A stretch of 64,000 bases of DNA from Epithemia pelagica (lineage: Eukaryota > Protista > Bacillariophyta), in assembly GCA_946965045.2 (NCBI GenBank), contig OX337237.1, positions 496,001 through 560,000 on the forward strand. Direction: 5' to 3'. Below, piece by piece: positions 5,879 to 57,184 of the stretch; the first letter of the stretch is position 1, and every line of letters starts with the position of its first letter. Position numbers and translations under genes: made by a program. The notes under the pieces were generated by a model that was not told the origin of the DNA, ran no database searches, and saw only the letters and a list, made by a program, of their open reading frames with translations.

Positions 5879-6233
5879 GGTGATGCTGTTGCGGGGATTG
5901 CTTTCGGTGGATAGAATGGAACGATATCTGATAGCGTTCATCTACCTGTCGTCGTGGCTGTCGTGACGATGTCGTCCGACAATGGGAGTAACTCGACTTT
6001 GTGGCTTTGAATGTCCTGATGACTGTCGTGAGAATGTCGTGATTGTCGAAAAAATGTCGTATTCGCATCGTTAACTCGTACTCAATACTCAATACTAAAC
6101 TCAGCCGTCCTTCTTGGCGGTTCAATTTTTGTTTCATTTGTGAAAAACTCTTGAAACAACCACCGAGAGCGAGTCATTTCTTTGCCATCAATGGTCAACG
6201 TTGTATCTTTGGATCCAGAGAAACCGTTCTCCC

Positions 6234-9067
6234 ATGAACCATCCATCTATCTACAATAGCGCACGGACTGCGTTACACCACCTGAGAACGAGATGGGTCG
6301 GTCCGCGAGATCTGCAGATTCCTTCTTCATCCCGTAAGTTCCAGGCTTTTCTCCTTGCGACTATTGCTGAGAATGTGTACTAGCTAGATAACCCAAGTCG
6401 TACAAAGCTCATGGCGCCTTTCGAACAGGTGCATCTGTAGATGGACCTTGTATGGAACACCGCTGTTGGACTGTTGCTCCGTATTCCGCCTAGCATTCGA
6501 ATAGGATTTGTCTTACCCTTTCCCTCACCGCTGTCTTGTGCTCCCTAGGTAATGCTTTACTGCGGAACCTTTCAAAGGCTTACGTAGCAACCACTGCTAA
6601 AATACCTGGAACGAAAGAAGCTAATGTTAGCAAATCACCGAAGGTTCCGAAGAATAACGAAACCCTCAAATACTACTACGATGAAAAACGGTGGAAAAAG
6701 GATAACCTCACGGTGCAGCAAGAGAAACGCTTAAGTGTTAATCTTGAAATGCCAATTGAGAGTCTCAATGATGAAGAAGATGACATTTTTATTGGGATTC
6801 AAAAAATGTTGAAGATCGACTTGCCTCACTTTTTAAAGACTGGCGAAGAAGTCCATCGTCAATCCGTCCCCTTGGACTCTTTGAGAATGGCTCCCTATGA
6901 CTTTGGATTCAGCCTGCGCCTTGCTCACGACGAGGACCTGAAAGTTTTCTTGCAAGAATTGGACAAGGTGAGACAATGGCACAAGGATGCCAAAATCCGT
7001 GATACATATCTTTCACCGACCTTGACAATAGTGCAATCTAGTGGAACGGGCAAATCGAGACTGATCACGGAGGCAAAGAAACAACTTGAGACAAATAAGC
7101 TTGCATGCCGAACTATTTTACTATCATCGAAGGACCACGCCAACCTTGAAAAAGATACATTTGATACCTCTTACTGCATTCCTGACACCCTGCCTGGAGA
7201 AGATGGTTTGAATAAAGCACGAGATATGTTTCGCAATATGATTTTCCATCAATGCGCCGAGGCAATTTCAAAATCAAATCCAAATGGGGAACCGAACGAA
7301 AATGATCCGACCGAGGTTATTCTGTTTTTCGACGAAGCTCAACACCTGGGAAAGCACGGCGGCTACTTGTTTCGTGTGCTGCGATGGATTCTTCGAGAGA
7401 ACCCTGAAATTTCTAATGACAAAAAGAAATATCGAATTGTTGCTGTTTTGGCGGGTACAACGACGTCATTGACCAATTTTTTCCCCGAAGTTGAGGCACA
7501 GTCGTCAGACACGAGAGTTCTTAACACCAAGGGCGCATATTTCGAGAAGGGGGAAACACCGTTTGACCCGTTCTTCATGTTCCGAACGATGGGATGTCTT
7601 GCAAACCACCCCGACGTTAGGACTCCTCAAAGCATGAGTGAAAGTGAATACGACAATATGATTCGATATGGTCGTCCCTTGTTCGCAGCAATGCACAAGG
7701 AGAAAAGGTTGGGCAATAACGAGATCTTTGAAATTGCCAACAAGATTATCCTGGGAGATATGACAATGCCTCTGGCGTCTTGTCTCAGTGTACTGGGAAC
7801 TCGTATCCAGATGGGACAGACATCTGTTGCCATGGTGTCAAGACTAGTCTCCAAAGGCTACGCTCACTTGACATCGTTTCAGCAGGCACCAAAGCGGTCT
7901 GACGTACCGTCTAAGGCAACATTTACGTTCTTGCCAGACCCTGTTTGCGCCCGGATCTGTATGGCACTCATGGACAAGGACTTTGCTATCCAAGGTGGAC
8001 GGAATGGGAGAGAACGTACGCTTGACGCGACTATCACTGGGAACAAGAAGACCTTTTGGTCCGCTAAGATGGGCGAGCTTTTTTCGAACAGTATATGCGA
8101 GGCCAACAAGGGGGACTACGGCGAAGTGGCATCGGCTTTGTTTTTGTTGTTTTGCGGAGACATTCTTCGCAAGAAGGCAGACCCTGACTACAAGACATTC
8201 TCAGTTGCCCTGGGTCAATATCTTGAACAGATTGCAAGAAATGCCAATGCTACTGAGGATGATGACCCGACGAACGTAGAATCAGGCCATGCGATATCAA
8301 ATTGTCACGTGAATTTCATACAGTTGTTTCAATATAGATTCCACATTGCATTGTCCGATCTTGGGCGGTCGGATTTTCTTGAGGGTTTGTACAACAAGGC
8401 TTGCGCAGTATACTCTCCAAACAACCGGGAAGCAGTAGATTTGGTGGTTCCCTGTCGATCAATGGCATCGTCAGGAAGGGTTGAGTACATACCCATCTTT
8501 GTGAGTGTAAAGAATCAAGCTGAGGTGTATCCCGCGACGGCGAACGGCTTCCTGTCTGAATCATTGAAGAAACTTCACTCAGCCGGTATCACAAAAGGTT
8601 TGTTGCTCCTGTGTCTCGTTGGACAAGATCGGGAGGATTTGAGACGGTCAGACTATAACAATGTTCTCGGCAAGAAGAGAACCGATAGCTTGTCCTCATT
8701 GAAGTTGGACGATGAGCTAAAGAAAGCCGTATGTAGCAACGTTGACAATTTGAGAGAAAAGCTGGTTCCCAAGATGTTTTGCATTCATAAAGACGAATTT
8801 GGTATCTATGAGGCTGTTATGGCTTCCAAGTCGCAGAAAGCGTTTCAACGAGCCGATGTGTTTACAATGCACCATGAGCTTTTGCATGAGGAACAAAAAG
8901 AAAGTGACAAGAACACCCAGTTGCCGTCCTTTGTATCCTCGTTTAGGAAAGAGCCGAGGGATTTGTATAAGAAAACGTTGGGTTGCGTGAGTAAGTATTC
9001 CACGAGACTGACTGATGTGAAGGAATCCAAGCTAGAGAAGTCTCTAGAGGATGAAGCAAAAGACTAA
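6234..9067 (+). CDS. CR-like NTPase-REase copy 2 (module B), spliced: exon 1 6234-6333, exon 2 6549-9067, 872 aa
   Basis: ATG at 6234. A phase-1 donor C|GTAAGT at 6334 and a phase-1 acceptor (ctcac...gtcttgtgctccctAG|GT) at 6548 join in frame (CGT = Arg). The ORF-track start is a TTG inside the intron. Confidence 0.8.
6334..6548 (+). other. Predicted 215-nt GT-AG intron in module B (equivalents 29731-29946 and 44586-44801)
   Basis: GTAAGT donor, ctcac branch-like motif, pyrimidine tract and TAG acceptor. Phases match in all three B copies. Confidence 0.75.
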
Positions 9068-9346
9068 GTAGAGTATTATCGCTGAGACTTTGTCTTTATT
9101 TTTCGTGAAGTGACATTTAGTGAGTTTTGAGTTCGAGCAGTATCCCGCATAGGAGGTGACGTACTGGTGTCACTTGAGGGATCGACGAGGCGCACATCCC
9201 GCAGTTGCCGCCCCGCAACTCACTCAAAGCGTGCGAGCTCTTCTAAAGAAAAGCTCGATGTTGCCGTTCAGGTTGACATACATTTCTTCCCCATCGCGTC
9301 GTACTCATCTTTGGGTCCTCCTGTCTGGACAACGTGGACTGTGTGG

Positions 9347-10455
9347 TCATGAAACATCCATGCCAACTGTCCCAATGAGGTGCCACTCATGCGACCATTT
9401 GTTTTTCATCGGGATAACCATTCCTCTCATGCTGAACTCATAGTCTTGCTGGCTTTGGTTTTGCCTCCGCCGACCATAGGACAAGTCCAAATCGGCACAC
9501 ATTTCCACGGATTCAGTCAAGGCTTGTTGATCGGCATTCGTCCAGGTCAAGGTGGTAGTGGCATTGCGTAGAATGCGCCGTCGTTCTTGTTCTTAAGCGA
9601 CATGCGCATATCCACATTGGAGAGCGACCATCACGACGGTATCCGGGGCCTCTGCGGTTTGGTCCACAACTTGTTGCAAGACTTGACGTCAGGCGGCTTG
9701 TTCCGTGTCATTGCAAACACGGTAGTGTGTCCAAGCCAAGAGAGTTCGATTCTTCATCTCTAGATTTATTGTGGTTGGCGACATAGGACAGGACGGTCCG
9801 CGCCGTGGTGGAATCCAGGACGGTTTCCATGAACAAGGCATGGGCGGGAGTGGCCTGACACTCCATGTACTTTTCAAGCCAGGCCGAGGGTCCAATGGCC
9901 ACGGCCGCATTGTCATTGCCATTGTTGCTGCGTCGGGTCAAGGCTTTCCCTGGAGTGGTACTCTTGGTATCGTGGAGATCAAACGCGGTGCCCTGTCTCG
10001 CTCGACCCGCGGCCAAGTCCAAGCTCGTTTGGGCATCTTGTCGACTGCAGTGCGGTTGATGCGGACTCTGAATGACGCGGTGCAACAGGACACGCGTCAA
10101 ATGACGGAGGGAATACTTGAACGAATCATCATATCCAGTGGCCTCAATCAAGGTAAAGCGTGTCAAGGCGGCCCGATCTTGGGTCGTTTCCACCATTTCG
10201 CAATCCAAGGCAAAAAGTTTGGGCGCTTGTTGTGGTTGTTGTTGCTCTTGTTATGATTTTTAGTGTGGTTGTGGTTGTTGCAGGCCAAGATGGTGGTCAA
10301 GAGGGTGGTCAAGTCTTGCACGAGCAATTGGTGGAGGGCTCGGGTCGCTGTATGGACTTCCAGGACCACGACACATGCGACACTGACGGGATTGTGCAAA
10401 CACAGCCAGGCCGGGGAAGACCCTTGTATCGAACGGCAGATGACGACGAAGCTTA
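9347..10455 (-). pseudogene. REX1/REXO5-like exonuclease relic (unit 2)
   Basis: Near-identical copy of 2785-3892. Confidence 0.7.
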
Positions 10456-13400
10456 ATGGTACGATCGTTTCGTTCCGGGTGCCAATTTGGTGGTATCATT
10501 GATCTCGGGTGGTGTTACTGTTATGGTGGTGGATGTTGGCATGGCGAGGCTGAACAAAATATCTCCATGATGCGATCCTTCGAGCAGACGTCCTTCGGGA
10601 CAACCACGTCTCCAATAAAAGGTGGCAGCCACCGTGTCGTCACTATGGTCGTCGTCGTCGTCTGCTGTAGTGGTAGTTGCATCGCCAGGGTCATCTGGTT
10701 GCTCTTGTGGTGGACCACACGGGCGTGAACGACGACGATGCCTCACCAAGGTGCGCCATTCATACAACTCGTGGACCGACACGAGGCCACTGACACTGGC
10801 ATGTATGGCGACGGTGCTCCATCGTTTGCGCAACTTTTTGTATCGACCCTTGTCCTATTTCGTCTACCCATTTTGGTCTATGGTCGTTGTTGGGTTGTGG
10901 TGGTTTGGTTCTTGGTTCCTGGGTGCTGCGGCAGCTTCTATTCCCCCAGCAAGACGTTTGTGTGTATATGTATTTGTATGTATGTATGAAGGTTGTTGTG
11001 GTTGTGGAACACAACGTTCTCGGCGGACATTCCAGTCGATGTGGTGGGCGATGCAACATGTTTCTCTTGTCGTGCTCTCGGTTGTTCTCTTCTTGTTCAA
11101 TCTCTTTGTTGATCGGTTCTCTTGTTTGATCTCTTTTGCTACGCAGAATCCAGGTGCTACATGACAATAGGACTACAAAAGTTTCAAGTTTTATGTCATG
11201 TTCTGCTCTGTTGTTTTCTTGTTGCGTGCTTGTTGCCCCGCCCCGTACAGACCATACGGACTCCTTGCAAATTCTATTTTTCAATTTTCATGGCTGCATC
11301 CCATTCCTCCACCAGTCTCAACAGACTGCTGGTGCATGCGGGGAATCTCCCACTCTTGCTGTGAGCCTTTCAAGGACCATTGAACGGAATACCGATGTTT
11401 GGACAATCATGGTTGAAGCCCTGTGTGGTTTCTCGGGAGACATTTTTGTTTCAATTGGCATTGCTGGACGACCTACAATGTGTTTAGCTTGAAAGCAGTG
11501 CCTTCACCGAACATCCATCTAGGTAGGGAAGTATGAAACAACTGTAACACATCTCTTTCACGGGTGGCTTGGATCTGTTCTTGGAAGCCAACCGCACATG
11601 TACGATGGCGAGCGACATTTGACTAACAGCAATCATTTATCGCAAGATTTATCAAACTCTCAGTGGCACCCAATCCTTGTTAATTCCCAACAAACCAACA
11701 AATTACGTTGAGCATGAAACGCTCTTTTTCCGTTAGCAGTTGAGCGTCTCTGTGGAGGCCGTTTCCAATCGGTGCGTAAGTTTCGTGCGAACATCTTGGT
11801 TGACAAGCTTGACTCGTCCATCTGTGACCCTGAACTTACCATATAAGATGCTGTTGCGCAGATATTTGATTTGGCAATGCTCCAGGCAAAGGCGCACAGG
11901 GCGACCCTATTTATCATTTGTCGTATGCCTCCCCCCAAGCTTTTCACAGCCAGCAATTTCCAGGGATTCAACTTCGCTACAGACCAATATTGTGGTCGGA
12001 CAAATGCCTCCAGATTGTTAGCAGGAACAATGAAAATGAACCGATCTTTGTCAAAGACAACAGGTGTGGCTCGTCGTCGACTTGCAATGCTTGTATTTTT
12101 TGTCGCTCTTCTTCCCAAACCTTGGATTCTTCTTCTTCTTTTTGTGCCTTGCGTCCTTTTCCTGCTTCTTCTCGACGTTTTCGTACTTCGGCCGATTTGG
12201 TCATGTTGCGACTGTGATCGTGACAGGTCCAGCGGAGGCTGCTTTCTTGTTTTTTCCTCTCCTCCTCCACACGGGCAGCGGCAGCCACTGTGGAAAAAGG
12301 ATCGTGGTTGCTACATGCTGTCGTTCGTTCCTTGTCGTCGTAGTCCTCGTCATCCTCTTCATCTTCGGCCTTCGGCATTTATCGGCCTTTCCGGAATCTC
12401 CACGAGGACCAACTCCACGTTTGTTGAATCGTCCCTTGGCCATGGTGATGCTGTTGCGGGGATTGCTTTCGGTGGATAGAATGGAACGATATCTGATAGC
12501 GTTCATCTACCTGTCGTCGTGGTTGTCGTGACGATGTCGTCCGACAATGGGAGTAAGTCGACTTTGTGGCTTTGAATGTCCTGATGACTGTCGTGAGAAT
12601 GTCGTGATTGTCGAAAAAATGTCGTATTCGCATTGTTAACTTGTACTCAATACGGTTCAGTGTGCATAGCCACGATTTAGGATAGTATAGTTGTGGTTGT
12701 CATCCCTTTGGGCACTCCAAACAAGACAAGGCGAGCGAGCGAGTTTCCAGAAAGCAACTGCAACAAAACAAAAATTCTCACGGCGACGAACGGCGCCTCC
12801 CCCAGCAACACTCTCTCCGACCACAACAAAGCACGCTTGCAAGCCGCCCTGGCCCGCCTCTCCCCCAGCAACCCCGACGACGCCGAAATCACCACAGGAG
12901 CCCGATTTCTTGGCCAACCGATCGGCTCCCAACCCTTTGCCCGATCCTTCATCCAGAAGCGAATTGAAAAAATCACCAAAGCCACCGCAACCCTGCGACA
13001 CTTGGACGACCTGCAGACACGGAGTATCTTGTTTAAATACTCCGCGGTCCCCGCGTTGCTCCACCTTCTTCCTACCGATATTGCCCAGGCCCATCCACAA
13101 CCCAACCAGCGGACCAGCCTATGGACCAGCCCCACCACAGAGGCGGTAGACAGGTTGATTGCTACGTTCCTCGCCCAACTGACCTCTACGCCCATGTCCG
13201 CCATCCCACCCATGGCACCACTCATAGCCTCCCTCCCTCAACGTCTGGGTGGCCTAGGTTACCACCACGCCGCAGCTTTAGCGTTCCCGTGCCTCCTGAC
13301 ACAAACCACTCGGGCCATCCGGTTGGCCCAGTCCAAAGCCACCCCGATCCCACCTTCCCACCGTCGCCAATTCCACAACTGGGAACAGAGCAAAAACCCA

Positions 13401-13788
13401 AGGCTGACACAGTTTCGACGAGGCCTTGCACTCCTGACAAAGGAGTACGCCGACGCGGCCCTCGTCACCCCACAACGATTCGACCACACAACACACCGTT
13501 GTCAGACACACCACATACTGACAACACACATCATTCCCAACCTGTTTGAGATCACACCGGCGGAACACCGCATCCACTTACCGGCCCTGTTGTCCCCGAT
13601 GACGAGTATGGCAATCCACATGCCAAGACCCTCGATCCGATTCCGCTTGGCCAACCCTGTCTTCCGCACGGCGATTCGTCGGAAACTCCGGATTCCATTT
13701 TTTCTTGCCACCACCACAACTACCCACTCCACATGCCGATGCCCTGCCCGGCGAATCCTTGACCCAGAAGGGGACCACCTGTTCAACT

Positions 13789-14546
13789 TGTTAGGATTCT
13801 CACCGAAAACTAGGTGGCGAAACCTACAACTCATCGAATGATGCTAGTATTTTATGGCATCCGATGACATTTTCCTAAAAGTGAGAAAAGAATGTCGGCA
13901 TGCTCGCGAAACTATAAATTTGGCCACGGCATGCTCGCAGTGCACGCGTTATCGGCGACCGCTCGGATATTAACTATGGCCCAACACGTGCGCGCCCAAA
14001 ACTATCAAGTGCGCGCCTCTACTATCCGAGTACGCGCATCCACGATTCGACCTAACGGTCTATGTAATCAGAGCACGAATCACGATCACGCGAGACCATA
14101 TCTCTGTTCCCACAAATCCAAGAATGCAAACAGCAACGCGCCCAGGACAAGACTTATACCACGACAAAGCAAGAGCTGTTGCATCCCATACATGTTATCC
14201 ATCACCCTATACATTCAATATACACCAATGCCGGTCTACTCCAACCAGTGAGGACCTATCACATCAGATCCATGGCCGTATACAAGAGCCAGGACTTTGG
14301 CACCATCAACCACCTTAGTTAGTAATCTTCTCACAATCATTAATATCATCATTTTAACACTCATCTTAAGACTAACCTCTTATCAGTGGACCGACTGCCC
14401 CCACCCACGGCGGACTTCGACTTGCAACTCTTCTCTGACCCGTGGAGGATTGTTGTATCGGTTGGTGATTCGATTGTCGGCTCAGCGAGCCTTTTACCTA
14501 TCCTACCTATCTGTCTAACCCCTGTTGAATCGAGAGAAGTTTATCA
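13789..14546 (+). repeat. Copia-1 5' LTR (758 bp)
   Basis: tgttaggatt...gaagtttatca. One mismatch to the 3' LTR was seen by eye (cgcgcc vs cgtgcc). Confidence 0.97.
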
Positions 14547-14557
14547 GATTAACAGTC
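14547..14557 (+). promoter_or_regulatory. Putative primer-binding site complementary to a tRNA-Asn(GUU) anticodon arm
   Basis: GATTAACAGTC directly follows the LTR. Its reverse complement GACTGTTAATC fits tRNA positions 30-40 with a GTT anticodon. Confidence 0.55.
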
Positions 14558-14584
14558 TCATCGTTTATTTCCGAGAAGCTTTCG

Positions 14585-15340
14585 ATGTCTCACGACGATT
14601 CCAACCTCTCTATTCGACACATCTTTCATTCCTTCCAACAAAGCGGGGAGGAACTCCATCCACCCGTGTCCCATCCGGGCGAGCCCTTGGTTGAAACTCC
14701 GAAACAGACCCCGACTCAGGCCAGTGCTCCGAATCCCTTCCAGACCCCGGACCAAGCGGTCCAGCCTCCTTCGATCCCGACTCAACCTTCGACTCCGCCT
14801 CGCCGTTTGAACCCTACTCGCACCCGACGTACGAGCCGTCTTCTTACTGCGCATATCCGACACTTCCGCGAGCCGACTGAGTCGACTACCGACCCCGACG
14901 TGATCCGTTCCACAACCGAACGCGAGGTCGATTTCCAGTCCGTCCAACCCGTGACTGACCTTGAGGACATCCAACGACTTCTCGACCTCTTGAACCAGTG
15001 CTCGAGACGCCGTTTCATTGTCCAAGCCCTGTTGGGCAACCCTGTGGAACCCATCCGTATTCGATTCATCTCCTTTGAACGTCCAACCAACTACTTCCAC
15101 ACCATCTGGATCGTCAACTCGACGACGAATCCGCTACCTACCCCGACTACTCGTCTCGACGAGTACGTCTCCTTTGTTCACGAGATCCATCTCTGCCAGG
15201 ATTTCCGTGCGACTATCTACCCTCTCTTCACTCAACACGTGAACCACTTGTTGGAAGACGACGACGTTGAAGAACTAGCCACTACAGTGACCGATTCCGC
15301 ATCTCGTCTTCAGTACCGAGCCGAAAGTGACCAAGAATAA
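14585..15340 (+). CDS. Extra ORF of unknown function (251 aa) between the PBS and gag of copia-1
   Basis: First ATG is at 14585 (the ORF-track start is a TTG inside the LTR). The N-half is Pro/Thr-rich and the C-half looks globular. It ends 314 nt before gag-pol. Confidence 0.6.
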   Translation: MSHDDSNLSIRHIFHSFQQSGEELHPPVSHPGEPLVETPKQTPTQASAPNPFQTPDQAVQPPSIPTQPSTPPRRLNPTRTRRTSRLLTAHIRHFREPTESTTDPDVIRSTTEREVDFQSVQPVTDLEDIQRLLDLLNQCSRRRFIVQALLGNPVEPIRIRFISFERPTNYFHTIWIVNSTTNPLPTPTTRLDEYVSFVHEIHLCQDFRATIYPLFTQHVNHLLEDDDVEELATTVTDSASRLQYRAESDQE

Positions 15341-15654
15341 GTAACTTTACGTAGTTTCTACACCAAACCAGACACAAGACCGAGTTCCGCACATCCGGGT
15401 ACCCTTGGTCGCACAACACGCCACACATTCCCGTCCAATCGCGAAAATTCGGCGAAAATTTGTTGAAACTCGGCGAAAATTTGTCGGAATCAACGGAAAT
15501 TTCCAGGAGTCGCACATCACAACACACATCCGGGTATCACATACGTGGTACATACGTGGCACACGTGGTACATCCGGGTTCCCATCACATCACACATTAA
15601 ATAAACCACATCACACCGCACATTAAATAAACATCGAACCAACCAAATAACATC

Positions 15655-33696: not shown

Positions 33697-33746
33697 CGCT
33701 TCCTCTGCACTGTTAACAGCTTACACGTTGTCACTCAAGAATCACC

Positions 33747-34974: not shown

Positions 34975-35023
34975 CAACCAAACCCGGGGTGGTTCCCCGG
35001 GCTGCTTCAAGACATCAAGCAGC
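34972..35023 (+). promoter_or_regulatory. Putative gag-pol stop-codon readthrough signal (TGA CAA CCA + stem-loops)
   Basis: The stop is followed in frame by an open pol frame. It has CARYYA context, an 8-nt spacer, hairpin CCCGGGG-tggtt-CCCCGGG (34983-35001) and a second hairpin GCTGCTT...AAGCAGC (35001-35023). Confidence 0.65.
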
Positions 35024-41039: not shown

Positions 41040-41512
41040 TGTTCAAAAGATCTACGTAATCGTCCGGGAATGGACCCGGGACTCCCATTCGGAAGTAGGA
41101 GATCGGCCGAAGAAAAGATGAGCATCATTCATCTTGAGAATTTGTCCCTCAAAGGACAAGAACGACGGGCATCCAAACAAGATGCTCACGAACGATACAA
41201 CAAAGACAACGCGTCATCGTCATGAGCGTTTAGAAGTGACAAACCGGCCCAATTCAACTGATACAGGCCAAAAGAATAACTGGCATTGCCTAAAAGGAAC
41301 AACGGCCAAGAACGGGCAGGAGAAACCCATTTAGGAAAACAAGATCGATGGACGATTGAACTATCGCCCAACCATCGACTCAACGCATCAAAAGGAAAGA
41401 CCTCAACGCCTTAGGCTGCAACACGCTAGATTAACCAAATAAACTCACAACTTAACTTCGTTTACACGGGTTGAGCTCTTTCTCTTTTAGCTACGGTAGG
41501 GAGAAAACAACA
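41040..41512 (+). repeat. Copia-2 3' LTR (473 bp)
   Basis: Direct repeat of 33224-33696. Confidence 0.96.
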
Positions 41513-44485: not shown

Positions 44486-47319
44486 ATGAACCATCCATCT
44501 ATCTACAATAGCGCACGGACTGCGTTACACCACCTGAGAACGAGATGGGTCGGTCCGCGAGATCTGCAGATTCCTTCTTCATCCCGTAAGTTCCAGGCTT
44601 TTTCTCCTTGCGACTGTTGCTGAGAATGTGTACTAGCTAGATAGCCCAAGTCGTACAAAGCTCATGGCGCCTTTCGAACAGGTGCATCTGTAGATGGACC
44701 TTGTATGGAACACCGCTGTTGGACTGTTGCTCCGTATTCCGCCTAGCATTCGAATAGGATTTGTCTTACCCTTTCCCTCACCGCTGTCTTGTGCTCCCTA
44801 GGTAATGCTTTACTGCGGAACCTTTCAAAGGCTTACGTAGCAACCACTGCTAAAATACCTGGAACGAAAGAAGCTAATGTTAGCAAATCACCGAAGGTTC
44901 CGAAGAATAACGAAACCCTCAAATACTACTACGATGAAAAACGGTGGAAAAAGGATAACCTTACGGATGATCAAGAGACAAACTTAAAATATTTTCTTGG
45001 ATGCCCAATTAAGTTATGCAGAGATAACAGTTCTCAGCGTCAGATAATTCAAGAAATGTTGAAGATCGACTTGCCTCACTTTTTAAAGACTGGCGAAGAA
45101 GTCCATCCTCAATCCGTCCCCTTGGACTCTTTGAGAATGGCTCCCTATGACTTTGGATTCAGCCTGCGCCTTGCTCACGACGAGGACCTGAAAGTTTTCT
45201 TGCAAGAATTGGACAAGGTGAGACAATGGCACAAGGATGCCAAAATCCGTGATACATATCTTTCACCGACCTTGACAATAGTGCAATCTAGTGGAACGGG
45301 CAAATCGAGACTGATCACGGAGGCAAAGAAACAACTTGAGACAAATAAGCTTGCATGCCGAACTATTTTACTATCATCGAAGGACCACGCCAACCTTGAA
45401 AAAGATACATTTGATACCTCTTACTGCATTCCTGACACCCTGCCTGGAGAAGATGGTTTGAATAAAGCACGAGATATGTTTCGCAATATGATTTTCCATC
45501 AATGCGCCGAGGCAATTTCAAAATCAAATCCAAATGGGGAACCGAACGAAAATGATCCGACCGAGGTTATTCTGTTTTTCGACGAAGCTCAACACCTGGC
45601 AAAGCACGGCGGCTACTTGTTTCGTGTGCTGCGATGGATTCTTCGAGAGAACCCTGAAATTTCTAATGACAAGAAGAAATATCGAATTGTTGCTGTGTTG
45701 GCGGGTACAACGACGTCATTGACCAATTTTTTCCCCGAAGTTGAGGCACAGTCGTCAGACACGAGAGTTCTTAACACCAAGGGCGCATATTTCGAGAAGG
45801 GGGAAACACCGTTTGACCCGTTCTTCATGTTCCGAACGATGGGATGTCTTGCAAACCACCCCGACGTTAGGACTCCTCAAAGCATGAGTGAAAGTGAATA
45901 CGACAATATGATTCGATATGGTCGTCCCTTGTTCGCAGCAATGCACAAGGAGAAAAGGTTGGGCAATAACGAGATCTTTGAAATTGCCAACAAGATTATC
46001 CTGGGAGATATGACAATGCCTCTGGCGTCTTTTGTCTCAGTGTACTGGGAACTCGTATCCAGATGGGACAGACATCTGTTGCCATGGTGTCAAGACTAGT
46101 CTCCAAAGGCTACGCTCACTTGACATCGTTTCAGCAGGCACCAAAGCGGTCTGACGTACCGTCTAAGGCAACATTTACGTTCTTGCCAGACCCTGTTTGC
46201 GCCCGGATCTGTATGGCACTCATGGACAAGGACTTTGCTATCCAAGGTGGACGGAATGGGAGAGAACGTACGCTTGACGCGACTATCACTGGGAACAAGA
46301 AGACCTTTTGGTCCGCTAAGATGGGCGAGCTTTTTTCGAACAGTATATGCGAGGCCAACAAGGGGGACTACGGCGAAGTGGCATCGGCTTTGTTTTTGTT
46401 GTTTTGCGGAGACATTCTTCGCAAGAAGGCAGACCCTGACTACAAGACGTTTTCAGTTGCCCTGGGTCAATATCTTGAACAGATTGCAAGAAATGCCAAT
46501 GCTACTGAGGATGATGACCCGACGAACGTAGAATCAGGCCATGCGATATCAAATTGTCACGTGAATTTCATACAGTTGTTTCAATATAGATTCCACATTG
46601 CATTGTCCGATCTTGGGCGGTCGGAATTTCTTGAGGGTTTGTACAACAAGGCTTGCGCAGTATACTCTCCAAACAACCGGGAAGCAGTAGATTTGGTGGT
46701 TCCCTGTCGATCAATGGCATCGTCAGGAAGGGTTGAGTACATACCCATCTTTGTGAGTGTAAAGAATCAAGCTGAGGTGTATCCCGCGACGGCGAACGGC
46801 TTCCTGTCTGAATCATTGAAGAAACTTCACTCAGCCGGTATCACAAAAGGTTTGTTGCTCCTGTGTCTCGTTGGACAAGATCGGGAGGATTTGAGACGGT
46901 CAGACTATAACAATGTTCTCGGCAAGAAGAGAACCGATAGCTTGTCCTCATTGAAGTTGGACGATGAGCTAAAGAAAGCCGTATGTAGCAACGTTGACAA
47001 TTTGAGAGAAAAGCTGGTTCCCAAGATGTTTTGCATTCATAAAGACGAATTTGGTATCTATGAGGCTGTTATGGCTTCCAAGTCGCAGAAAGCGTTTCAA
47101 CGAGCCGATGTGTTTACAATGCACCATGAGCTTTTGCATGAGGAACAAAAAGAAAGTGACAAGAACACCCAGTTGCCGTCCTTTGTATCCTCGTTTAGGA
47201 AAGAGCCGAGGGATTTGTATAAGAAAACGTTGGGTTGCGTGAGTAAGTATGCCACGAGACTGACTGATGTGAAGGAATCCAAGCTAGAGAAGTCTCTAGA
47301 GGATGAAGCAAAAGACTAA
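44486..47319 (+). pseudogene. CR-like NTPase-REase copy 5 (module B), frameshifted near 46030
   Basis: gcgtcttttgtctc versus gcgtcttgtctc in the other copies (+2 nt). This could be a sequencing error. Confidence 0.75.
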
Positions 47320-47597
47320 GTAGAGTATTATCGCTGAGTTTTTGTCTTTATTTTTCGTGAAGTGACATTTAGTGAGTTTTGAGTTCGAGCAGTATCCCGC
47401 ATAGGAGGTGACGTACTGGTGTCACTTGAGGGATCGACGAGGCGCACATCCCGCAGTTGCCGCCCCGCAACTCACTCAAAGCGTGCGAGCTGTTCTAAGA
47501 AAAGCTCGATGTTGCCGTTCAGGTTGACATACATTTCTTCCCCATCGCGTCGTACTCATCTTTGGGTCCTCCTGTCTGGACAACGTGGACTGTGTGG

Positions 47598-48707
47598 TCA
47601 TGAAACATCCATGCCAACTGTCCCAATGAGGTGCCACTCATGCGACCATTTGTTTTTCATCGGGATAACCATTCCTCTCATGCCGAACTCATAGTCTTGC
47701 TGGCTTTGGTTTTGCCTCCGCCGACCCACAGGACAAGTCCAAATCGGCACACGTTTCCACGGATTCAGTCAAGGCTTGTTGATCGGCATTCGTCCAGGTC
47801 AAGGTGGTAGTGGCATTGCGTAGAATGCGCCGTCGTTCTTGTTCTTAAGCGACATGCGCATATCCACATTGGAGAGCGACCATCACGACGGTATCCGGGG
47901 CCTCTGCGGTTTGGTCCACAACTTGTTGCAAGACTTGACGTCAGGCGGCTTGTTCCGTGTCATTGCAAACACGGTAGTGTGTCCAAGCCAAGAGAGTTCG
48001 ATTCTTCATCTCTAGATTTATTGTGGTTGGCGACATAGGACAGGACGGTCCGCGCCGTGGTGGAATCCAGGACGGTTTCCATGAACAAGGCATGGGCGGG
48101 AGTGGCCTGACACTCCATGTACTTTTCAAGCCAGGCCGAGGGTCCAATGGCCACGGCCGCATTGTCATTGCCATTGTTGCTGCGTCGGGTCAAGGCTTTC
48201 CCTGGAGTGGTACTCTTGGTATCGTGGAGATCAAACGCGGTGCCCTGTCTCGCTCGACCCGCGGCCAAGTCCAAGCTCGTTTGGGCATCTTGTCGACTGC
48301 AGTGCGGTTGATGCGGACTCTGAATGACGCGGTGCAACAGGACACGCGTCAAATGACGGAGGGAATACTTGAACGAATCATCATATCCAGTGGCCTCAAT
48401 CAAGGTAAAGCGTGTCAAGGCGGCCCGATCTTGGGTCGTTTCCACCATTTCGCAATCCAAGGCAAAAAGTTTGGGCGCTTGTTGTGGTTGTTGTTGCTCT
48501 TGTTACGATTTTTAGTGTGGTTGTGGTTGTTGCAGGCCAAGAGGGTGGTCAAGAGGGTGGTCAAGTCTTGCACGAGCAATTGGTGGAGGGCTCGGGTCGC
48601 TGTATGGACTTCCAGGACCACGACACATGCGACACTGACGGGATTGTGCAAACACAGCCAGGCCGGGGAAGACCCTTGTATCGAACGGCAGATGACGACG
48701 AAGCTTA
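47598..48707 (-). pseudogene. REX1/REXO5-like exonuclease relic (unit 5)
   Basis: Near-identical copy of 2785-3892. Confidence 0.7.
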
Positions 48708-50912
48708 ATGGTACGATCGTTTCGTTCCGGGTGCCAATTTGGTGGTATCATTGATCTCGGGTGGTGTTACTGTTATGGTGGTGGATATTGGCATGGCGAG
48801 GCTGAACAAAATATCTCCATGATGCGATCCTTCGAGCAGACGTCCTTCGGGACAACCACGTCTCCAATAAAAGGTGGCAGCCACCGTGTCGTCACTATGG
48901 TCGTCGTCGTCGTCTGCTGTAGTGGTAGTTGCATCGCCAGGGTCATCTGGTTGCTCTTGTGGTGGACCACACGGGCGTGAACGACGACGATGCCTCACCA
49001 AGGTGCGCCATTCATACAACTCGTGGACCGACACGAGGCCACTGACACTGGCATGTATGGCGACGGTGCTCCATCGTTTGCGCAACTTTTTGTATCGACC
49101 CTTGTCCTATTTCGTCTACCCATTTTGGTCTATGGTCGTTGTTGGGTTGTGGTGGTTTGGTTCTTGGTTCCTGGGTGCTGCGGCAGCTTCTATTCCCCCA
49201 GCAAGACGTGTGTGTATATGTATTTGTATGTATGTATGAAGGTTGTTGTGGTTGTGGAACACAACGTTCTCGGCGGACATTCCAGTCGATGTGGTGGGCG
49301 ATGCAACACGTTTCTCTTGTCGTGCTTTCGGTTGTTCTCTTCTTGTTCAATCTCTTTGTTGATCGGTTCTCTTGTTTGATCTCTTTTGCTACGCAGAATC
49401 CAGGTGCTACATGACAATAGGACTACAAAAGTTTCAAGTTTTATGTCATGTTCTGCTCTGTTGTTTTCTTGTTGCGTGCTTGTTGCCCCGCCCCGTACAG
49501 ACCATACGGACTCCTTGCAAATTCTATTTTTCAATTTTCATGGCTGCATCCCATTCCTCCACCAGTCTCAACAGACTGCTGGTGCATGCGGAGAGTCTCC
49601 CACTCTTGCTGTGAGCCTTTCAAGGACCATTGAACGGAATACCGATGTTTGGACAATCATGGTTGAAGCCCTGTGTGGTTTCTCGGGAGACATTTTTGTT
49701 TCAATTGGCATTGCTGGACGACCTACAATGTGTTTAGCTTGAAAGCAGTGCCTTCACCGAACATCCATCTAGGTAGGGAAGTATGAAACAACTGTAACAC
49801 ATCTCTTTCACGGGTGGCTTGGATCTGTTCTTGGAAGCCAACCGCACATGTACGATGGCGAGCGACATTTGACTAACAGCAATCATTTATCGCAAGATTT
49901 ATCAAACTCTCAGTGGCACCCAATCCTTGTTAATTCCCAACAAACCAACAAATTACGTTGAGCATGAAACGCTCTTTTTCCGTTAGCAGTTGAGCGTCTC
50001 TGTGGAGGCCGTTTCCAATCGGTGCGTAAGTTTCGTGCGAACATCTTGGTTGACAAGCTTGACTCGTCCATCTGTGACCCTGAACTAACCATATAAGATG
50101 CCGTTGCCCAGATATCTGATTTGGCAATGCTCCAGGCAAAGGCGCACAGGGCGACCCTATTTATCATTTGTCGTATGCCTCCCCCCAAGCTTTTCACAGC
50201 CAGCAATTTCCAGGGATTCAACTTCGCTACAGACCAATATTGTGGTCGGACAAATGCCTCCAGATTGTTAGCAGGAACAATGAAAATGAACCGATCTTTG
50301 TCAAAGACAACAGGTGTGGCTCGTCGTCGACTTGCAATGCTTGCATTTTTTGTCGCTCTTCTTCCCAAACCTTGGATTCTTCTTCTTCTTTTTGTGCCTT
50401 GCGTCTTTTTCCTGCTTCTTCTCGACGTTTTCGTACTTCGGCCGATTTGGTCATGTTGCGACTGTGATCGTGACAGGTCCAGCGGAGGCTGCTTTCTTGT
50501 TTTTTCCTCTCCTCCTCCACACGGGCAGCGGCAGCCACTGTGGAAAAAGGATCGTGGTTGCTACATGCTGTCGTTCGTTCCTTGTCGTCGTAGTCCTCGT
50601 CATCCTCGTCATCCTCTTCATCTTCGGCCTTCGGCATTTATCGGCCTTTCCGGAATCTCTACGAGGACCAACTCCACGTTTGTTGAATCGTCCCTTGGCC
50701 ATGGTGATGCTGTTGCGGGGATTGCTTTCGGTGGATAGAATGGAACGATATCTGATAGCGTTCATCTACCTGTCGTCGTGGTTGTCGTGACGATGTCGTC
50801 CGACAATGGGAGTAACTCGACTTTGTGGCTTTGAATGTCCTGATGACTGTCGTGATAATGTCGTGATTGTCGAAAAAATGTCGTATTCGCATTGTTAACT
50901 CGTACTCAATAC

Positions 50913-52949
50913 GGTTCAGTGTGCATAGCCACGATTTAGCATAGTATAGTTGTGGTTGTCATCCCTTTGGGCACTCCAAACAAGACAAGGCGAGCGAGCG
51001 AGTTTCCAGAAAGCAACTGCAACAAAACAAAAATTCTCACGGCGACGAACGGCGCCTCCCCCAGCAACACTCTCTCCGACCACAACAAAGCACGCTTGCA
51101 AGCCGCCCTGGCCCGCCTCTCCCCCAGCAACCCCGACGACGCCGAAATCACCACGGGAGCCCGATTTCTTGGCCAACCGATCGGCTCCCAACCCTTTGCC
51201 CGATCCTTCATCCAGAAGCGAATTGAAAAAATCACCAAAGCCACCGCAACCCTGCGACACTTGGACGACCTGCAGACACGGAGTATCTTGTTTAAATACT
51301 CCGCGGTCCCCGCGTTGCTCCACCTTCTTCCTACCGATATCGCCCAGGCCCACCCACAACCCAACCAGCGGACCAGCCTATGGACCAGCCCCACCACAGA
51401 GGCGGTAGACAGGTTGATTGCTACGTTCCTCGCCCAACTGACCTCCACGCCCATGTCCGCCATCCCACCCATGGCACCACTCATAGCCTCCCTCCCTCAA
51501 CGTCTGGGTGGCCTAGGTTACCACCACGCCGCAGCTTTAGCGTTCCCGCGCCTCCTGACACAAACCACTCGGGCCATCCGGTTGGCCCAGTCCAAAGCCA
51601 CCCCGATCCCACCTTCCCACCGTCGCCAATTCCACAACTGGGAACAGAGCAAAAACCCAAGGCTGACACAGTTTCGACGAGGCCTCGCACTCCTGACAAA
51701 GGAGTACGCCGACGCGGCCCTCGTCACCCCACAACGATTCGACCACACAACACACCGTTGTCAGACACACCACATACTGACAACACACATCATTCCCAAC
51801 CTGTTTGAGATCACACCGGCGGAACACCGCATCCACTTACCGGCCCTGTTGTCCCCGATGACGAGTATGGCAATCCACATGCCAAGACCCTCGATCCGAT
51901 TCCGCTTGGCCAACCCTGTCTTCCGCACGGCGATTCGTCGGAAACTCCGGATTCCATTTTTTCTTGCCACCACCACAACTACCCACTCCACATGCCGATG
52001 CCCTGCCCGGCGAATCCTTGACCCAGAAGGGGACCACCTGTTCAACTGCGCGGCCGCGTCAAAAACGGCCCTCTTCAATGCCATTCGCGACACACTTTAC
52101 GACGTGCTGCGACACACGGCACCGCCCGCCAAAGTCGTTGACGGTCCGCACGATGTCCACGTTGAACCGCCGGGTTTGACACCCGACCACAACCGCAACA
52201 TCCGCCCCGCCGACGTGGGCCTCCGACTTGCTCAACCTCACATCAACGAGCCTTTTTCGTATGCCGCAATCGACATCACCGTCCCGCCGCCACAGAAAGC
52301 CGACCTTGCCCTTGACCCGTCCGACCCTCTCTCCATCGCCGCCGCTGCATCCAGGACGCATCAAGACTCCGCAAGAGCAAAATTCTGTCGCGATCCCGAC
52401 ACCGCCCAACATTTACTCCACAACGGCGTTTACCTTGTACCCTTCACCGTCGACCACTTAGGATCGCTGGGTTCGTTTGCCCAGACGCTCCTCTTCCACC
52501 CCGACAAGCACCCACACCCATTCTCCACGGCCGTCCCACCATCCTGGCCCAACCCTCACTTCGGCAAGGCGCCGGCACGAAGCATCCAACACCCGGCGGC
52601 ATACGTCTTGTACCAACAACTCGACCGAGCGCCGCACCACATTTTCGACAAAGCAAACACCGACACCAAATTCCGCGACTATGACGCCAATATCTTCTCC
52701 CTCTCCCATTACGCCAAGGCCTCGCTCTCTCATGCCATCATTTCCGCCCTCGCCATCCATGCGAACAACCAAATCAGTGCCATCCGAGAATCTGCAGTAC
52801 AACGGCGATTCCGCACCACCCAAATGACCAACCTGGCAACCACAAATTATGCTCCAGTGACACCAATCTACTCCCCCCGGTCCCTCTCGGAATTCTTCCC
52901 GGATACCGCCGTACCACCGCTCCTCTGCATGCCCACCGCTGAGGCGTAA
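50913..52949 (+). mobile_element. Uninterrupted 5'-truncated CRE-like LINE fragment (665-codon open frame 50952-52949)
   Basis: Same motifs as 12654-22995, with the empty copia-1 target site. Confidence 0.78.
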
Positions 52950-53290
52950 CCCGTAGTCTAATAACACACCGTAATAGACAGAAAATTCCAAACTCTCTTG
53001 CAACAACTACAAGAACAAAAAGAACAACAACCTTCCTTGAGAGCAAAAGAACCACTCTAAGACAACGACCAACAACGACGAGACACTGCAACCAACAAGC
53101 CAAAAGAGAATCCAACGAGTTCTCCTCCTCTCCCTCTCTTCAACGACAAACCTCCCTCCACAGAACAAAACAAGAACCACTCTCCTTCTCACCACCACCA
53201 AGAGACAAACAACGACAACGTCTTGAGATTCTCTCGAACAACAACCAACAAGTCAAGAATCTATCCACGAAAACACCGATTTCATTCATC

Positions 53291-55495
53291 ATGAATGCTT
53301 TGTTTCTTGTTTTGTCGTTTTGGACGATGCTCTTGCTTGCCGTGTCACCCTGTCACGCTTGGCAGGGGTCGACACCACGAACCGCCACGACCCGTCCGTT
53401 GCACCATCCTGGTCATTGTCGTCGCCATTCCATGGTTGTCTTGTCCATGACTAGCAAATCACCGAAGGTTCCGAAGAATAACGAAACCCTCAAATACTAC
53501 TACGATGAAAAACGGTGGAAAAAGGATGGCCTTACGGATGGTCAAGAGAGGAGCTTAAACGTCAGTTTGGGATACCGAATTGGGGATCTCAAAGAAGACA
53601 GTAATCGAGTCAATTTAATTCAAGAGGAGTTGAAGATCGACTTGCCTCACTTCTTGAAGACTGGCGAAGAAGTCCATCGTCAATCCGTCCCCTTGGACTC
53701 TTTGAGAATGGCTCCCTATGACTTTGGATTCAGCCTGCGCCTTGCTCACGACGAGGACCTGAAAGTTTTCTTGCAAGAATTGGACAAGGTGAGACAATGG
53801 CACAAGGATGCCAAAATCCGTGATACATATCTTTCACCGACCTTGACAATTGTGCAATCAAGTGGAACGGGCAAATCTAGACTAATGATTGAGGCAAAGA
53901 AACAACTTGAGACAAATAAGATTGCATGCCGGACTATTTTACTATCATCGAAGGACCGCGCCAACCTTGAAAAAGATACATTTGACACCTCTTACTGCAT
54001 TCCTGACACCCTGCCTGGAGAAGATGGTTTGAATAAAGCACGAGATATGTTTCGCAATATGATTTTCCATCAATGCGCCAAGGCAATTTCAAAATCAAAT
54101 CCAAATCGGGATCCGCACGAAAATGATCCGACCGAGGTTATTCTGTTTTTCGACGAAGCTCAACACCTGGCAAAGCACGGCGGCTACTTGTTACGAGTGC
54201 TGCGATGGATTCTTCGAGAGAACCCTGAAATTTCTAATGACAAGAAGAAATATCGAATTGTTGCTGTTTTGGCGGGTACAAAGACGTCATTGACCAATTT
54301 TTTCCCCGAAGTTGAGGCACAGTCGTCAGACACGAGAGTTCTTAACACCGAGGGCGCATATTTCGAGAAGGGGGAAACACCGTTTGACCCGTACTTCATG
54401 TTCCGAACGATGGGATGTCTTGCAAACCACCCCGACGTTAGGACTCCTCAAAGCATGAGTGAAAGTGAATACGACAATATGATTCGATATGGTCGTCCCT
54501 TGTTCGCAGCAATGCACAAGGAGAAAAGGTTGGGCAATAACGAGATCTTTGAAATTGCCAACAAGATTATCCTGGGAGATATGACAATGCCTCTGGCGTC
54601 TTGTCTCAGTGTACTGGGAACTCGTATCCAGATGGGACAGACATCTGTTGCCATGGTGTCAAGACTAGTCTCCAAAGGCTACGCTCACTTGACATCGTTT
54701 CAGCAGGCACCAAAGCGGTCTGACGTACCGTCTAAGGCAACATTTACGTTCTTGCCAGACCCTGTTTGCGCCCGGATCTGTATGGCACTCATGGACAAGG
54801 ACTTTGCTATCCAAGGTGGACGGAATGGGAGAGAACGTACGCTTGACGCGACTATCACTGGGAACAAGAAGACCTTTTGGTCCGCTAAGATGGGCGAGCT
54901 TTTTTCGAACAGTATATGCGAGGCCAACAAGGGGGACTACGGCGAAGTGGCATCGGCTTTGTTTTTGTTGTTTTGCGGAGACATTCTTCGCAAGAAGGCA
55001 GACCCTGACTACAAGACGTTTTCAGTTGCCCTGGGTCAATATCTTGAACAGATTGCAAGAAATGCCAATGCTACTGAGGATGATGACCCGACGAACGTAG
55101 AATCAGGCCATGCGATATCAAATTGTCACGTGAATTTCATACAGTTGTTTCAATATAGATTCCACGTTGCATTGTCCGATCTTGGGCGGTCGGAATTTCT
55201 TGAGGGTTTGTACAACAAGGCTTGCGCAATTTACTGTCCAAACAACCAGGAAGCAGCAGATTTGGTGGTTCCCTGCCGATCAATGGCATTGTCAGGAAGG
55301 GTTGAGTACATTCCCATCTTTGTGAGTGTCAAGAACCAAGCTAGCGTGTCTCCCGCGAAGGCGAACGGCTTCCTGTCTGAATCATTGAAGAAACTTCACT
55401 CAGCCGGTATCACAAAAGGTTTGTTGCTCCTGTGTCTCGTTGGACAAGATCGGGAGGATTTGGGACGGTCAGACTATAACAATGTTCTCGGCTAG
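53291..55495 (+). CDS. CR-like NTPase-REase copy 6 (module A), 734 aa, same TAG truncation as copy 3
   Basis: Signal and transit leader identical to copy 3. TAG at 55493-55495; the tail frame runs to 55888. Confidence 0.75.
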   Translation: MNALFLVLSFWTMLLLAVSPCHAWQGSTPRTATTRPLHHPGHCRRHSMVVLSMTSKSPKVPKNNETLKYYYDEKRWKKDGLTDGQERSLNVSLGYRIGDLKEDSNRVNLIQEELKIDLPHFLKTGEEVHRQSVPLDSLRMAPYDFGFSLRLAHDEDLKVFLQELDKVRQWHKDAKIRDTYLSPTLTIVQSSGTGKSRLMIEAKKQLETNKIACRTILLSSKDRANLEKDTFDTSYCIPDTLPGEDGLNKARDMFRNMIFHQCAKAISKSNPNRDPHENDPTEVILFFDEAQHLAKHGGYLLRVLRWILRENPEISNDKKKYRIVAVLAGTKTSLTNFFPEVEAQSSDTRVLNTEGAYFEKGETPFDPYFMFRTMGCLANHPDVRTPQSMSESEYDNMIRYGRPLFAAMHKEKRLGNNEIFEIANKIILGDMTMPLASCLSVLGTRIQMGQTSVAMVSRLVSKGYAHLTSFQQAPKRSDVPSKATFTFLPDPVCARICMALMDKDFAIQGGRNGRERTLDATITGNKKTFWSAKMGELFSNSICEANKGDYGEVASALFLLFCGDILRKKADPDYKTFSVALGQYLEQIARNANATEDDDPTNVESGHAISNCHVNFIQLFQYRFHVALSDLGRSEFLEGLYNKACAIYCPNNQEAADLVVPCRSMALSGRVEYIPIFVSVKNQASVSPAKANGFLSESLKKLHSAGITKGLLLLCLVGQDREDLGRSDYNNVLG

Positions 55496-56958: not shown

Positions 56959-57184
56959 TACTAGCTAGTATCGGCGATTGCTCTATTGGTCCTTTGTTGC
57001 AAGAAAGAGAGAAACGAAGCTCACGGGAACAAGAAGAATCAAGGAACTGAGTCGAAACCTTGGATTGTTGAATCAAAATCGGGACAGAACGACCATTACC
57101 GCAAAGGTTTGGGATCGTTGATCGTGTATTGTTGTGTTGTTATCCATCTTGTCTAACTCCAAATCATCTATCAATCTCATCATC

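Follow-up and report, generated by a model that had tools for sequence, protein, structure and literature searches.

Six tandem copies of a gene for a P-loop nucleoside triphosphatase (NTPase) with a restriction-fold-like C-terminal domain lie in a 64,000-nucleotide stretch of the genome of the diatom Epithemia pelagica (GenBank assembly GCA_946965045.2, contig OX337237.1, positions 496,001 to 560,000), hereafter the window, and two different 5′ modules replace one another in front of them at fixed points. We read the locus, with a probability of roughly 0.72, as a recently amplified array of genes of the type NTPase plus restriction endonuclease (REase) whose leaders have been exchanged, with repeated turnover of the N-terminal address and with dual targeting unproven. 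The modular leader exchange itself is real. A reading made from the window's sequence only (the sequence-only reading) had proposed that the array sends one nuclease to both DNA-containing organelles, with a plastid-type leader encoded by module A and a mitochondrial-type leader encoded by module B; this dual-organelle targeting is unproven, and the evidence on each leader is given below. The window is nuclear DNA carrying a young tandem array riddled with transposons, and four of its reading frames are identical to predicted proteins of the 753-kb contig ctg1316l of ENA assembly ERZ21939226. Positions are those of the window, all features with an orientation are on the + strand, and loci elsewhere in the assembly are cited by the prefix L.

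The six units, each of about 6.0 kb, stand in tandem, and the exchanged modules are bounded by identical break points, …CTCAATAC on the upstream side and TAGCAAATCA… on the downstream side. The octamer CTCAATAC occurs eight times on the + strand against 1.5 expected, a count reached in no shuffle, and at the break points it ends at 6088, 12653, 29485, 44340 and 50912. The word TAGCAAATCA occurs five times against 0.17 expected, starting at 6628, 23498, 30026, 44881 and 53452, and the alignment of 70-6088 with 6628-12653 places a sixth body start at position 70. In a self-BLAST comparison 70-6088, 6628-12653 and 44881-50912 were mutually about 98% identical, with alignments ending exactly at the two words. 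Between the break points lies either module A, of 2539 bp (50913-53451), or module B, of 539 bp at 6089-6627 and of 540 bp at 29486-30025 and 44341-44880, and the six modules read A,B,A,B,B,A from 5′ to 3′. The first A is present only as positions 1-69, the final 69 bp of leader A, which align with 23429-23497 and 53383-53451, the remainder lying outside the window. The word counts and alignment ends confirm the exact points of divergence and reconvergence given in the sequence-only reading; its module order was also confirmed, and its two leader peptides were reproduced as written. Its module sizes were right for A at 2539 bp and for B at about 540 bp, but not for the A at 12654-23497, which measures 10.8 kb because a nested Copia-type long terminal repeat (LTR) retrotransposon lies inside it.

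Module A is a composite, of which about 78% is a 5′-truncated non-LTR retroelement and only the final 161 bp encode leader A. In unit 6 the module opens with the 5′ part of the segment that we call A′ (50913-51010), which is 88% identical to L010:9463-9559, and continues into a truncated RVT_1-type element (51011-52991) consisting of the C-terminal 665 codons, a 3′ untranslated region (UTR) of about 35 bp and an A-rich tail. It then passes through a C/A-rich, 5′UTR-like stretch of A′ (52992-53290), free of ATG by eye and 96.7% identical to L010, and ends with the 53 codons of leader A in the frame of the body (53291-53451), which encode a hydrophobic core, the sequence C-H-A↓W and an acid-free tail rich in R, S, T, P and H. 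The 665-codon frame spans 50952-52949, and relatives of the element carry RVT_1 (PF00078) upstream of the matching part. Homology with a full-length copy at L004, 95% identical, begins abruptly at 51014, and two further copies of this long interspersed nuclear element (LINE) stop matching at about 52985, just 5′ of A-runs; the abrupt start and the A-runs identify 51011-52991 as a 5′-truncated non-LTR retroelement, whose target duplication is ambiguous (CAGAAA-like). Unit 3 has the same parts, namely the 5′ part of A′ (12654-12751, matching the LINE-free L010:9463-9559), the first part of the interrupted retroelement (12752-13788, 95% identical to L004:9944-10820), its second part (22089-23037, assigned by comparison with other loci), and the 3′ part of A′ with its C/A-rich 5′UTR-like stretch, again ATG-free by eye, and leader A from the ATG at 23337 (23038-23497). 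Compared with the 466-bp segment 52986-53451, this 3′ part has a single difference, at 53019, and leader A is identical in the two units.

The same gene is found without the LINE at L010 (ctg1359l), in two tandem copies in which the roughly 98 bp that precede the LINE in the array and the 460 bp that follow it are contiguous, so that this locus represents the empty site. The first copy is an uninterrupted 866-codon open reading frame (ORF; L010:9860-12457) from the leader-A ATG to the normal stop, and the second copy is frameshifted. Since leader A heads an intact 866-codon gene at this LINE-free locus, it is a genuine older 5′ end. The real alternative to module B is therefore A′, of about 560 bp and made up of the 5′UTR-like stretch and the 53-codon leader, which is an established 5′ end of this gene and did not arise as a side product of the array. 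In the array, the LINE fragment sits about 300 bp upstream of the leader-A ATG. The idea that module A is a LINE with a 3′-transduced flank was rejected, as the 466-bp stretch and the 98-bp piece are contiguous at L010 and there is no A-tail at 53451. A phmmer search with the 866-residue protein for a donor gene of leader A gave no match covering residues 1-53 among the best 150. Each of the LINE-free A′-type genes at L010 is preceded by a 294-codon ORF (L010:7910-8794 and 14365-15249) with a weak match to PLDc_2 (E 8e-4). Within the retroelement ORF of unit 6, the part that follows a region resembling the thumb of reverse transcriptase holds, at 51990-52300, a Cys-x2-Cys…His…Cys knuckle and then RPAD…IDITV; this stretch resembles the restriction-like endonuclease of R2-type elements but has no sequence match in Pfam or the PDB, and a PDB sequence search with the full-length LINE relative returned nothing.

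Module B is found in front of a second body as well. At L007 (ctg1316l) and at its partner haplotig L008 (ctg1308l), the spacer and module B run to the equivalent of position 6627 and then continue in frame into a different P-loop protein of about 750 residues (L007:5082-7427, L008:10001-12346). The second body fused to B is a 99.4% duplicate of a native gene in L009, whose own N-terminus is rich in Ser and Pro and carries a KRQ(K/R) motif resembling a nuclear localization signal (NLS). Its 90% cluster contains KAG7372969.1 and KAG7340313.1 of Nitzschia inconspicua, both under the UniRef name 'Crinkler (CRN) family protein', and in an hhalign profile comparison of bodies 1 and 2 the Walker A motif alone aligned, with a probability of 15%. 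The inserted segment of the second body is flanked by a 78-bp direct repeat corresponding to 6550-6627 of the window, and downstream of it lies an older copy of body 1 (95-96%). The single bond 6627/6628 is thus used in three joints, B with body 1, A′ with body 1 and B with body 2, with a microhomology of at most 1-2 nt. Header swapping of the type known from CRN/CR effectors, as supposed in the sequence-only reading, is borne out by B on two bodies and by A′ and B on one body, all at the same bond. A single complex rearrangement, a fragile site or a former exon boundary may underlie the three-joint coincidence.

How a B-type gene starts is less simple. In unit 2 a stop at 6491-6493 ends the frame of the body on its upstream side, and there is no in-frame ATG after this stop. 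Lacking a contiguous ATG, a B-type gene could be translated only after splicing, from a non-AUG codon or from an internal Met. The splicing model of the sequence-only reading divides module B (6089-6627) into a proposed exon 1 at 6234-6333, beginning with the ATG at 6234, a proposed intron at 6334-6548 and a proposed exon 2 at 6549-6627. The 215-nt intron would have the donor GTAAGT at 6334, a polypyrimidine tract and the acceptor …CTCCCTAG (CTAG) at 6548, and among 156 possible ATG/GT…AG models it alone combines a consensus donor with a long pyrimidine tract. The exon-2 boundary has independent support, as homology with the older body copy in L007/L008 begins at 6550 and the 78-bp direct repeat there coincides with the proposed exon 2. 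The possibility that this copy is a spliced retrocopy, which would have proved the intron, was rejected since exon 1 does not precede it; neither a spliced retrocopy nor a transcript was found. An out-of-frame upstream ATG at 6191 opens a 22-codon ORF (6191-6259) that overlaps the proposed start at 6234.

The predicted leader B is Arg-rich, with one acidic residue among its first 50 positions and no hydrophobic core. To put such features in proportion, a base rate was taken from 1597 distinct peptides that begin with ATG and stay open for 60 codons or more, in all six frames of the window and six loci. A B-like composition (six or more Arg, no more than one acidic residue and no hydrophobic core) was found in 61 of them (3.8%), so the 'mitochondrial' character of B carries little weight. 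The proposed mitochondrial leader thus keeps its Arg-rich composition, which is not rare, and depends on a predicted intron whose first exon is overlapped by an upstream ORF. Most likely, B-type proteins stay cytosolic or nuclear or are poorly translated. The B copies of the window differ at five positions, none of them exonic, and the copies at L007/L008 have three exon substitutions. Only the last 33 bp or so of B align with the paralogs, and B keeps ancestral coding sequence (…KEANV) that is missing from A′. The 5′ regions of A′, B and the paralogs were also compared as possible diverged homologues, and this was rejected as local alignments were no better than those of shuffles. At the 5′ joints of B (6081-6095, 29478-29492 and 44333-44347) TCAATAC stands twice in tandem, and at A-type joints once; the doubling may be a microhomology footprint of the replacement.

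Leader A has, in qualitative terms, the form of a plastid-type presequence. A 12-residue window of its signal-peptide-like core has a mean hydropathy of 2.36, C stands at −3 and A at −1 (…SPCHA) of the putative cleavage site with W at +1, and the following 30 residues, rich in Arg, Ser, Thr, Pro and His, contain no D or E, at least three R/K and at least five S/T. Leader A was the sole peptide of the 1597 with these properties, a base rate that is an upper bound on the surprise, as the criteria were set after leader A had been seen; it is clearly not a typical random peptide. A hand sum over positions +1 to +20 with the published ASAFind matrix (Table S2 of PMC4329603, cut-off 2) gave 1.46, below the cut-off. 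In that matrix Trp at +1 has a weight of 0.15 against 3.25 for Phe, and leader A falls at best into the low-confidence class, for which the specificity is 0.82 (PMC4329603). The plastid-type leader proposed earlier accordingly agrees with the qualitative diatom rule, in its core, its C/A pair, its W at +1 and its acid-free tail, but not with the quantitative score, and a plastid presequence is plausible at low confidence. A′-type proteins probably enter the endoplasmic reticulum (ER), with the complex plastid or secretion as possible further routes.

The wider family strengthens the plastid idea for the family, and not for leader A specifically. In the three closest paralogs, which show 86% DNA identity and lie in ordinary gene neighbourhoods, an in-frame upstream ATG encodes M(T/M)RTRVLL…VAG↓FS(A/V)RPPY…RRR. 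Here (L001:9860-10000, L002:9860-10000 and L002:19100-19230) the gene caller chose a downstream Met, and the skipped ATG adds a leader of the form signal peptide↓Phe, which makes the public N-termini of the family unreliable. By the same hand sum the paralog leader …VAG↓FSARPP reached 4.24, P0010 with …SGA↓FVAP 4.40 and P0020 4.49. Of 119 full-length representatives, 11 have a hydrophobic N-terminus, and in nine of these 11 (about 8% of the 119) a small residue is followed by F/W/Y/L, for example SGA↓FVAP, CNA↓FTVF, AEG↓FAAS and ADA↓FVSY; five of these nine have Phe at +1, or up to eight if alternative sites are allowed. The leader-bearing members are scattered over the family tree, and most of the remaining members, including MMETSP transcripts marked complete, have acidic or NLS-like N-termini, a distribution which shows that N-terminal addresses have changed repeatedly in the family.

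These data bear on the strongest alternative, in which A′ and the leaders with a small residue before Phe are genuine presequences for the plastid (or the periplastid space or ER) only, part of the family acts on plastid DNA, and B is a derivative that has lost its targeting. The high sums of the paralogs and of P0010 and P0020, the recurrence of such sites among the hydrophobic N-termini, the intact 866-codon gene headed by leader A and the acceptance of W at +1 by ASAFind all fit it. Set against them are the acidic or NLS-like starts of most members, complete transcripts among them, the paralog gene call at the downstream ATG, which leaves the upstream leader as a possible 5′UTR, and the low-confidence class of leader A itself. 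We regard this alternative as possible but clearly the less probable account.

The body that follows either leader has a core of about 810 residues (813 in the Pfam search). A short mosaic patch at its N-terminus is followed by the P-loop NTPase, then by a helical region, and the C-terminus is formed by a domain like the PD-(D/E)xK restriction fold. The Walker A motif is GTGKS and the Walker B motif FFDEAQ in unit 2, and in an alignment of 55 sequences GTGKS and hhhhDEAQ are nearly invariant; Pfam detected only AAA_22, weakly. An AlphaFold (AF2) model built from this alignment had a predicted local distance difference test score (pLDDT) of 86 and a predicted template modelling score (pTM) of 0.85, and its N-terminal half matched the PDB folds of ORC/Cdc6, CED-4, NLRC4, NRC resistosomes, Avs4 and SAMD9. 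By this model the N-terminal half is a P-loop NTPase of the STAND/AAA+ type (ORC-like). The C-terminal 309 residues, modelled separately (pLDDT 86.5), matched EcoO109I, Mus81, AgeI, BbvCI, Hef and MspJI, all of the PD-(D/E)xK fold, at marginal scores (best E 1.5e-3, TM 0.24), and Pfam, PDB-sequence and profile searches matched the domain to no nuclease family. Conserved in it is the order E…D…S-x-K (E in 50, D in 54, S in 52 and K in 45 of the 55 sequences), with Ser where D/E is expected. A lead for this motif is the Cfr10I/NgoMIV/AgeI group of type II restriction enzymes, which use S-x-K in place of (D/E)-x-K. The body shares with that group a …D…S-V-K and a separate Glu, and AgeI and EcoO109I are among its best fold matches; the fold scores are marginal (TM 0.2-0.24), and no sequence relationship was found. 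Of the NTPase-nuclease architecture claimed from sequence, the NTPase half is carried by motifs and fold matches and the nuclease half by weak fold matches. An NTPase with a restriction-fold domain is a reasonable description of the modelled body, and its nuclease part is weakly supported.

The family comprises 446 cluster representatives at 50% identity with E ≤ 0.001, of which, among the matches listed, very few carry a name. Relatives of the body occur in Nitzschia, Cylindrotheca closterium and Seminavis robusta. The family is almost confined to diatoms; in a word-limited profile search the sole matches outside them were weak ones in Agaricomycete fungi, and none indicated homology to named CRNs.

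Three of the six bodies of the window are already pseudogenes. Intact are the A-type unit 1 (70-2506; 811 codons to the normal stop, with its first 64 or so residues, to KIDL, matching the N-terminus of the 818-residue P0119 of ctg1316l), the B-type unit 2 (6628-9067; identical to P0127 when read from TTG 6536) and the B-type unit 4 (30026-32462; equal to P0116). Unit 3 (23498-25541; equal to P0122 from an internal Met) has a premature stop at 25539-25541, about 130 codons short, and unit 6 (53452-55495) has the same stop at 55493-55495, while the B-type unit 5 (44881-47320; equal to the 436-residue P0124) is broken by a 2-bp insertion near 46030. The broken units 3 and 6 are both of the A copies with a visible leader, and full-length A-type genes are present elsewhere in the assembly.

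The pattern of differences among the units points to block duplication and conversion. Multi-unit blocks recur, for example 3258-13788 and 41510-52047 at 98.9% identity, and such duplications account for the irregular order of A and B; the A/B alternation came about as blocks were duplicated and exchanged unequally, and does not express a programme of targeting. The first 300 bp or so of the body hold 70 of about 156 variable sites. The N-terminal patch (about 6700-6810) exists in three versions, one in units 1, 3 and 6, one in unit 2 and one in units 4 and 5, independently of the type of leader. The first and third versions resemble paralogs (P0111/113/114 and P0002), and that of unit 2 is identical to P0123, a LINE-free A′ gene. 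That each version recurs in paralogs elsewhere, whatever the leader, points to ectopic gene conversion. The synonymous divergence of the bodies, at 1-5%, exceeds the 0.25-0.6% of the spacers, which is the pattern expected if conversion imports paralog sequence.

Could the array be a side product, without function, of segmental duplication in a region rich in transposons, with leaders that are meaningless junctions? Half of the bodies are broken, B lacks a contiguous ATG, the units enclose one LINE and two LTR elements, and gag-like debris flanks the array. The ratio of nonsynonymous to synonymous divergence (dN/dS) between units, taken pairwise outside the variable patch, is however 0.2-0.6 and not about 1, which, although the counts are small, speaks against wholesale neutral decay. 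Three bodies in the window are intact, as are other full-length copies in the assembly, and leader A, which differs strongly from random peptides, has been retained at a second locus. Decay alone is for these reasons an unlikely account.

Still less probable, and in our view very improbable, is the functional system in which one nuclease would go to both organelles with A as a plastid and spliced B as a mitochondrial presequence: it would draw on the singular fit of leader A to the diatom rule, on the best of the 156 intron models with its matching homology boundary in L007/L008, on the Arg-rich, acid-poor make-up of B and on the changing addresses of the family, but leader A scores below 2, the composition of B does not discriminate and its start is overlapped from 6191, a premature stop cuts short the two A copies whose leader is visible, a frameshift breaks one B copy, no relative with a mitochondrial-type N-terminus was noticed, although no scan dedicated to such N-termini was made, and the presence of B on a second body with an NLS-like native N-terminus fits an accidental fusion better than designed targeting. 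The one-nuclease-to-both-organelles system of the sequence-only reading is unsupported, and half of the copies are broken.

Under the reading that we prefer, an amplified array with exchanged leaders, the two 5′ ends are structural variants. A′ is the older 5′ end, and in the array it has acquired the 1.98-kb 5′-truncated LINE and, in one copy, also the nested Copia element. B is a 539-bp replacement, known here only from the array, that provides a start codon only by way of the 215-nt intron. At the end of the array, B has also been joined, at the identical phosphodiester bond, to the unrelated CRN-named NTPase body. Leaders, patches and bodies were then mixed as blocks were duplicated, crossing-over was unequal and paralogs converted one another. 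We infer that the family is a fast-turnover NTPase-nuclease of the intracellular conflict or defence type, whose N-terminal address is gained, lost and exchanged. Several points weigh against this account. The copies and leaders are known from DNA sequence alone; the polarity between A′ and B is ambiguous, since B holds the 33 bp or so of ancestral coding sequence that A′ is without; the leaders are near-identical, differing by two replacements from locus to locus and by none inside the array, so that selection on them is not measurable; the use of one bond in three joints is unexplained by ordinary illegitimate recombination; and the C-terminal domain is assigned to the restriction fold on weak scores (E 1.5e-3 and TM 0.24 in Foldseek, with no sequence profile match to a nuclease family).

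The closest described kind of system, in architecture and in modular exchange, is that of the oomycete CRN/CR (Crinkler-RHS-type) proteins. According to the summary in PMC5289972 of the work of Zhang et al. (2016), these carry exchangeable N-terminal headers on C-termini composed of an NTPase, a helix-turn-helix and an REase. N-terminal exchange on NTPase-REase bodies is a pattern already described there, and the earlier statement that no such system had been described was overstated. The array resembles the CRN/CR proteins in the order of its body (P-loop NTPase, helical region, restriction-fold-like domain), in its multi-copy and fast-evolving nature, in the exchange of N-terminal modules at a fixed junction and in the neighbouring second body that UniRef names CRN. 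It differs in that Pfam found no Crinkler/Ubl header and no LFLAK-HVLVxxP motif is present in the array proteins, in that the exchanged pieces are short low-complexity leaders of 53-65 residues and not folded headers, in that the host is a free-living alga, and in that no sequence similarity of body 1 to named CRNs was detected. The array is thus not an established member of the CRN class, the more so as the scores for its restriction fold are weak. A literature search for diatom Crinkler arrays or plastid-targeted P-loop nucleases gave nothing specific.

Two other comparisons are informative. With the STAND NTPases that have nuclease effectors (bacterial Avs, and the NLR clusters of animals and plants), the closest known kind in fold, the array shares the NTPase fold of CED-4, NLRC4, NRC and Avs4 and the occurrence in tandem clusters with pseudogenes, chimeras and conversion; the body is without a repeat-type sensor domain, and its nuclease-like domain is C-terminal. 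With the diatom bipartite presequence (ASAFAP; PMC4329603) leader A shares a signal-peptide-like core, the two small residues ahead of the putative site, a Trp after it that ASAFind accepts, and a tail with net positive charge, no acidic residue and many Ser and Thr, and the paralogs and some relatives have the canonical form with a small residue before Phe; a Trp is rare at +1, and the transit score of leader A is below the high-confidence cut-off. In the boldest extension of these comparisons, the genes would belong to a large unrecognised diatom family of STAND NTPases with a restriction fold, whose address is reset by leader exchange among nucleus or cytosol, complex plastid and perhaps mitochondrion, the array would be a conflict or defence system able to place a nuclease in organelles, and 6627/6628 would be a recombination-prone joint between address and body like the CRN header junction; we consider this improbable.

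The remainder of the window is spacer and mobile DNA. The spacer of unit 1 (2507-6088, 3.6 kb, without assigned strand) holds no recognisable gene and ends in CTCAATAC, and a Pfam search of spacer ORFs gave no match. The nested Copia-type LTR retrotransposon in the LINE fragment of unit 3 (13789-22088) was delimited by self-BLAST, Pfam and its ends. It has 758-bp LTRs that are 99.9% identical, TG…CA termini, a 5-bp target duplication (CAACT) and a 1893-codon ORF with RVT_2 and rve, and is in all these respects a Ty1/Copia element. A second LTR retrotransposon, in the spacer of unit 4 (33224 to about 41512), has LTRs of about 480 bp and the 5-bp target duplication TTTCC; a relative of it lies in L003, in reverse orientation and at a different site of the array. 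Unit 6, and with it the array, breaks off at 56682. Beyond it (56683-64000) lies transposon debris, including a gag-like ORF with zinc knuckles (57134-58321), an imperfect tandem repeat of about 200 bp (59195-59894) and a 388-codon ORF (60368-61534).

If the leaders work, these would be, to our knowledge, the first CRN-like NTPase-nucleases delivered into a secondary plastid, and the locus would be a natural experiment in the gain, loss and swapping of targeting signals on one body. Regardless of targeting, the locus documents the shuffling of exons or leaders at a single bond, a LINE-associated remodelling of 5′ ends with the empty site kept elsewhere in the genome, and gene conversion among dispersed diatom paralogs. 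With 446 representatives at 50% identity, almost none of them named, the family also marks a sizeable blind spot in the annotation of diatom genomes.

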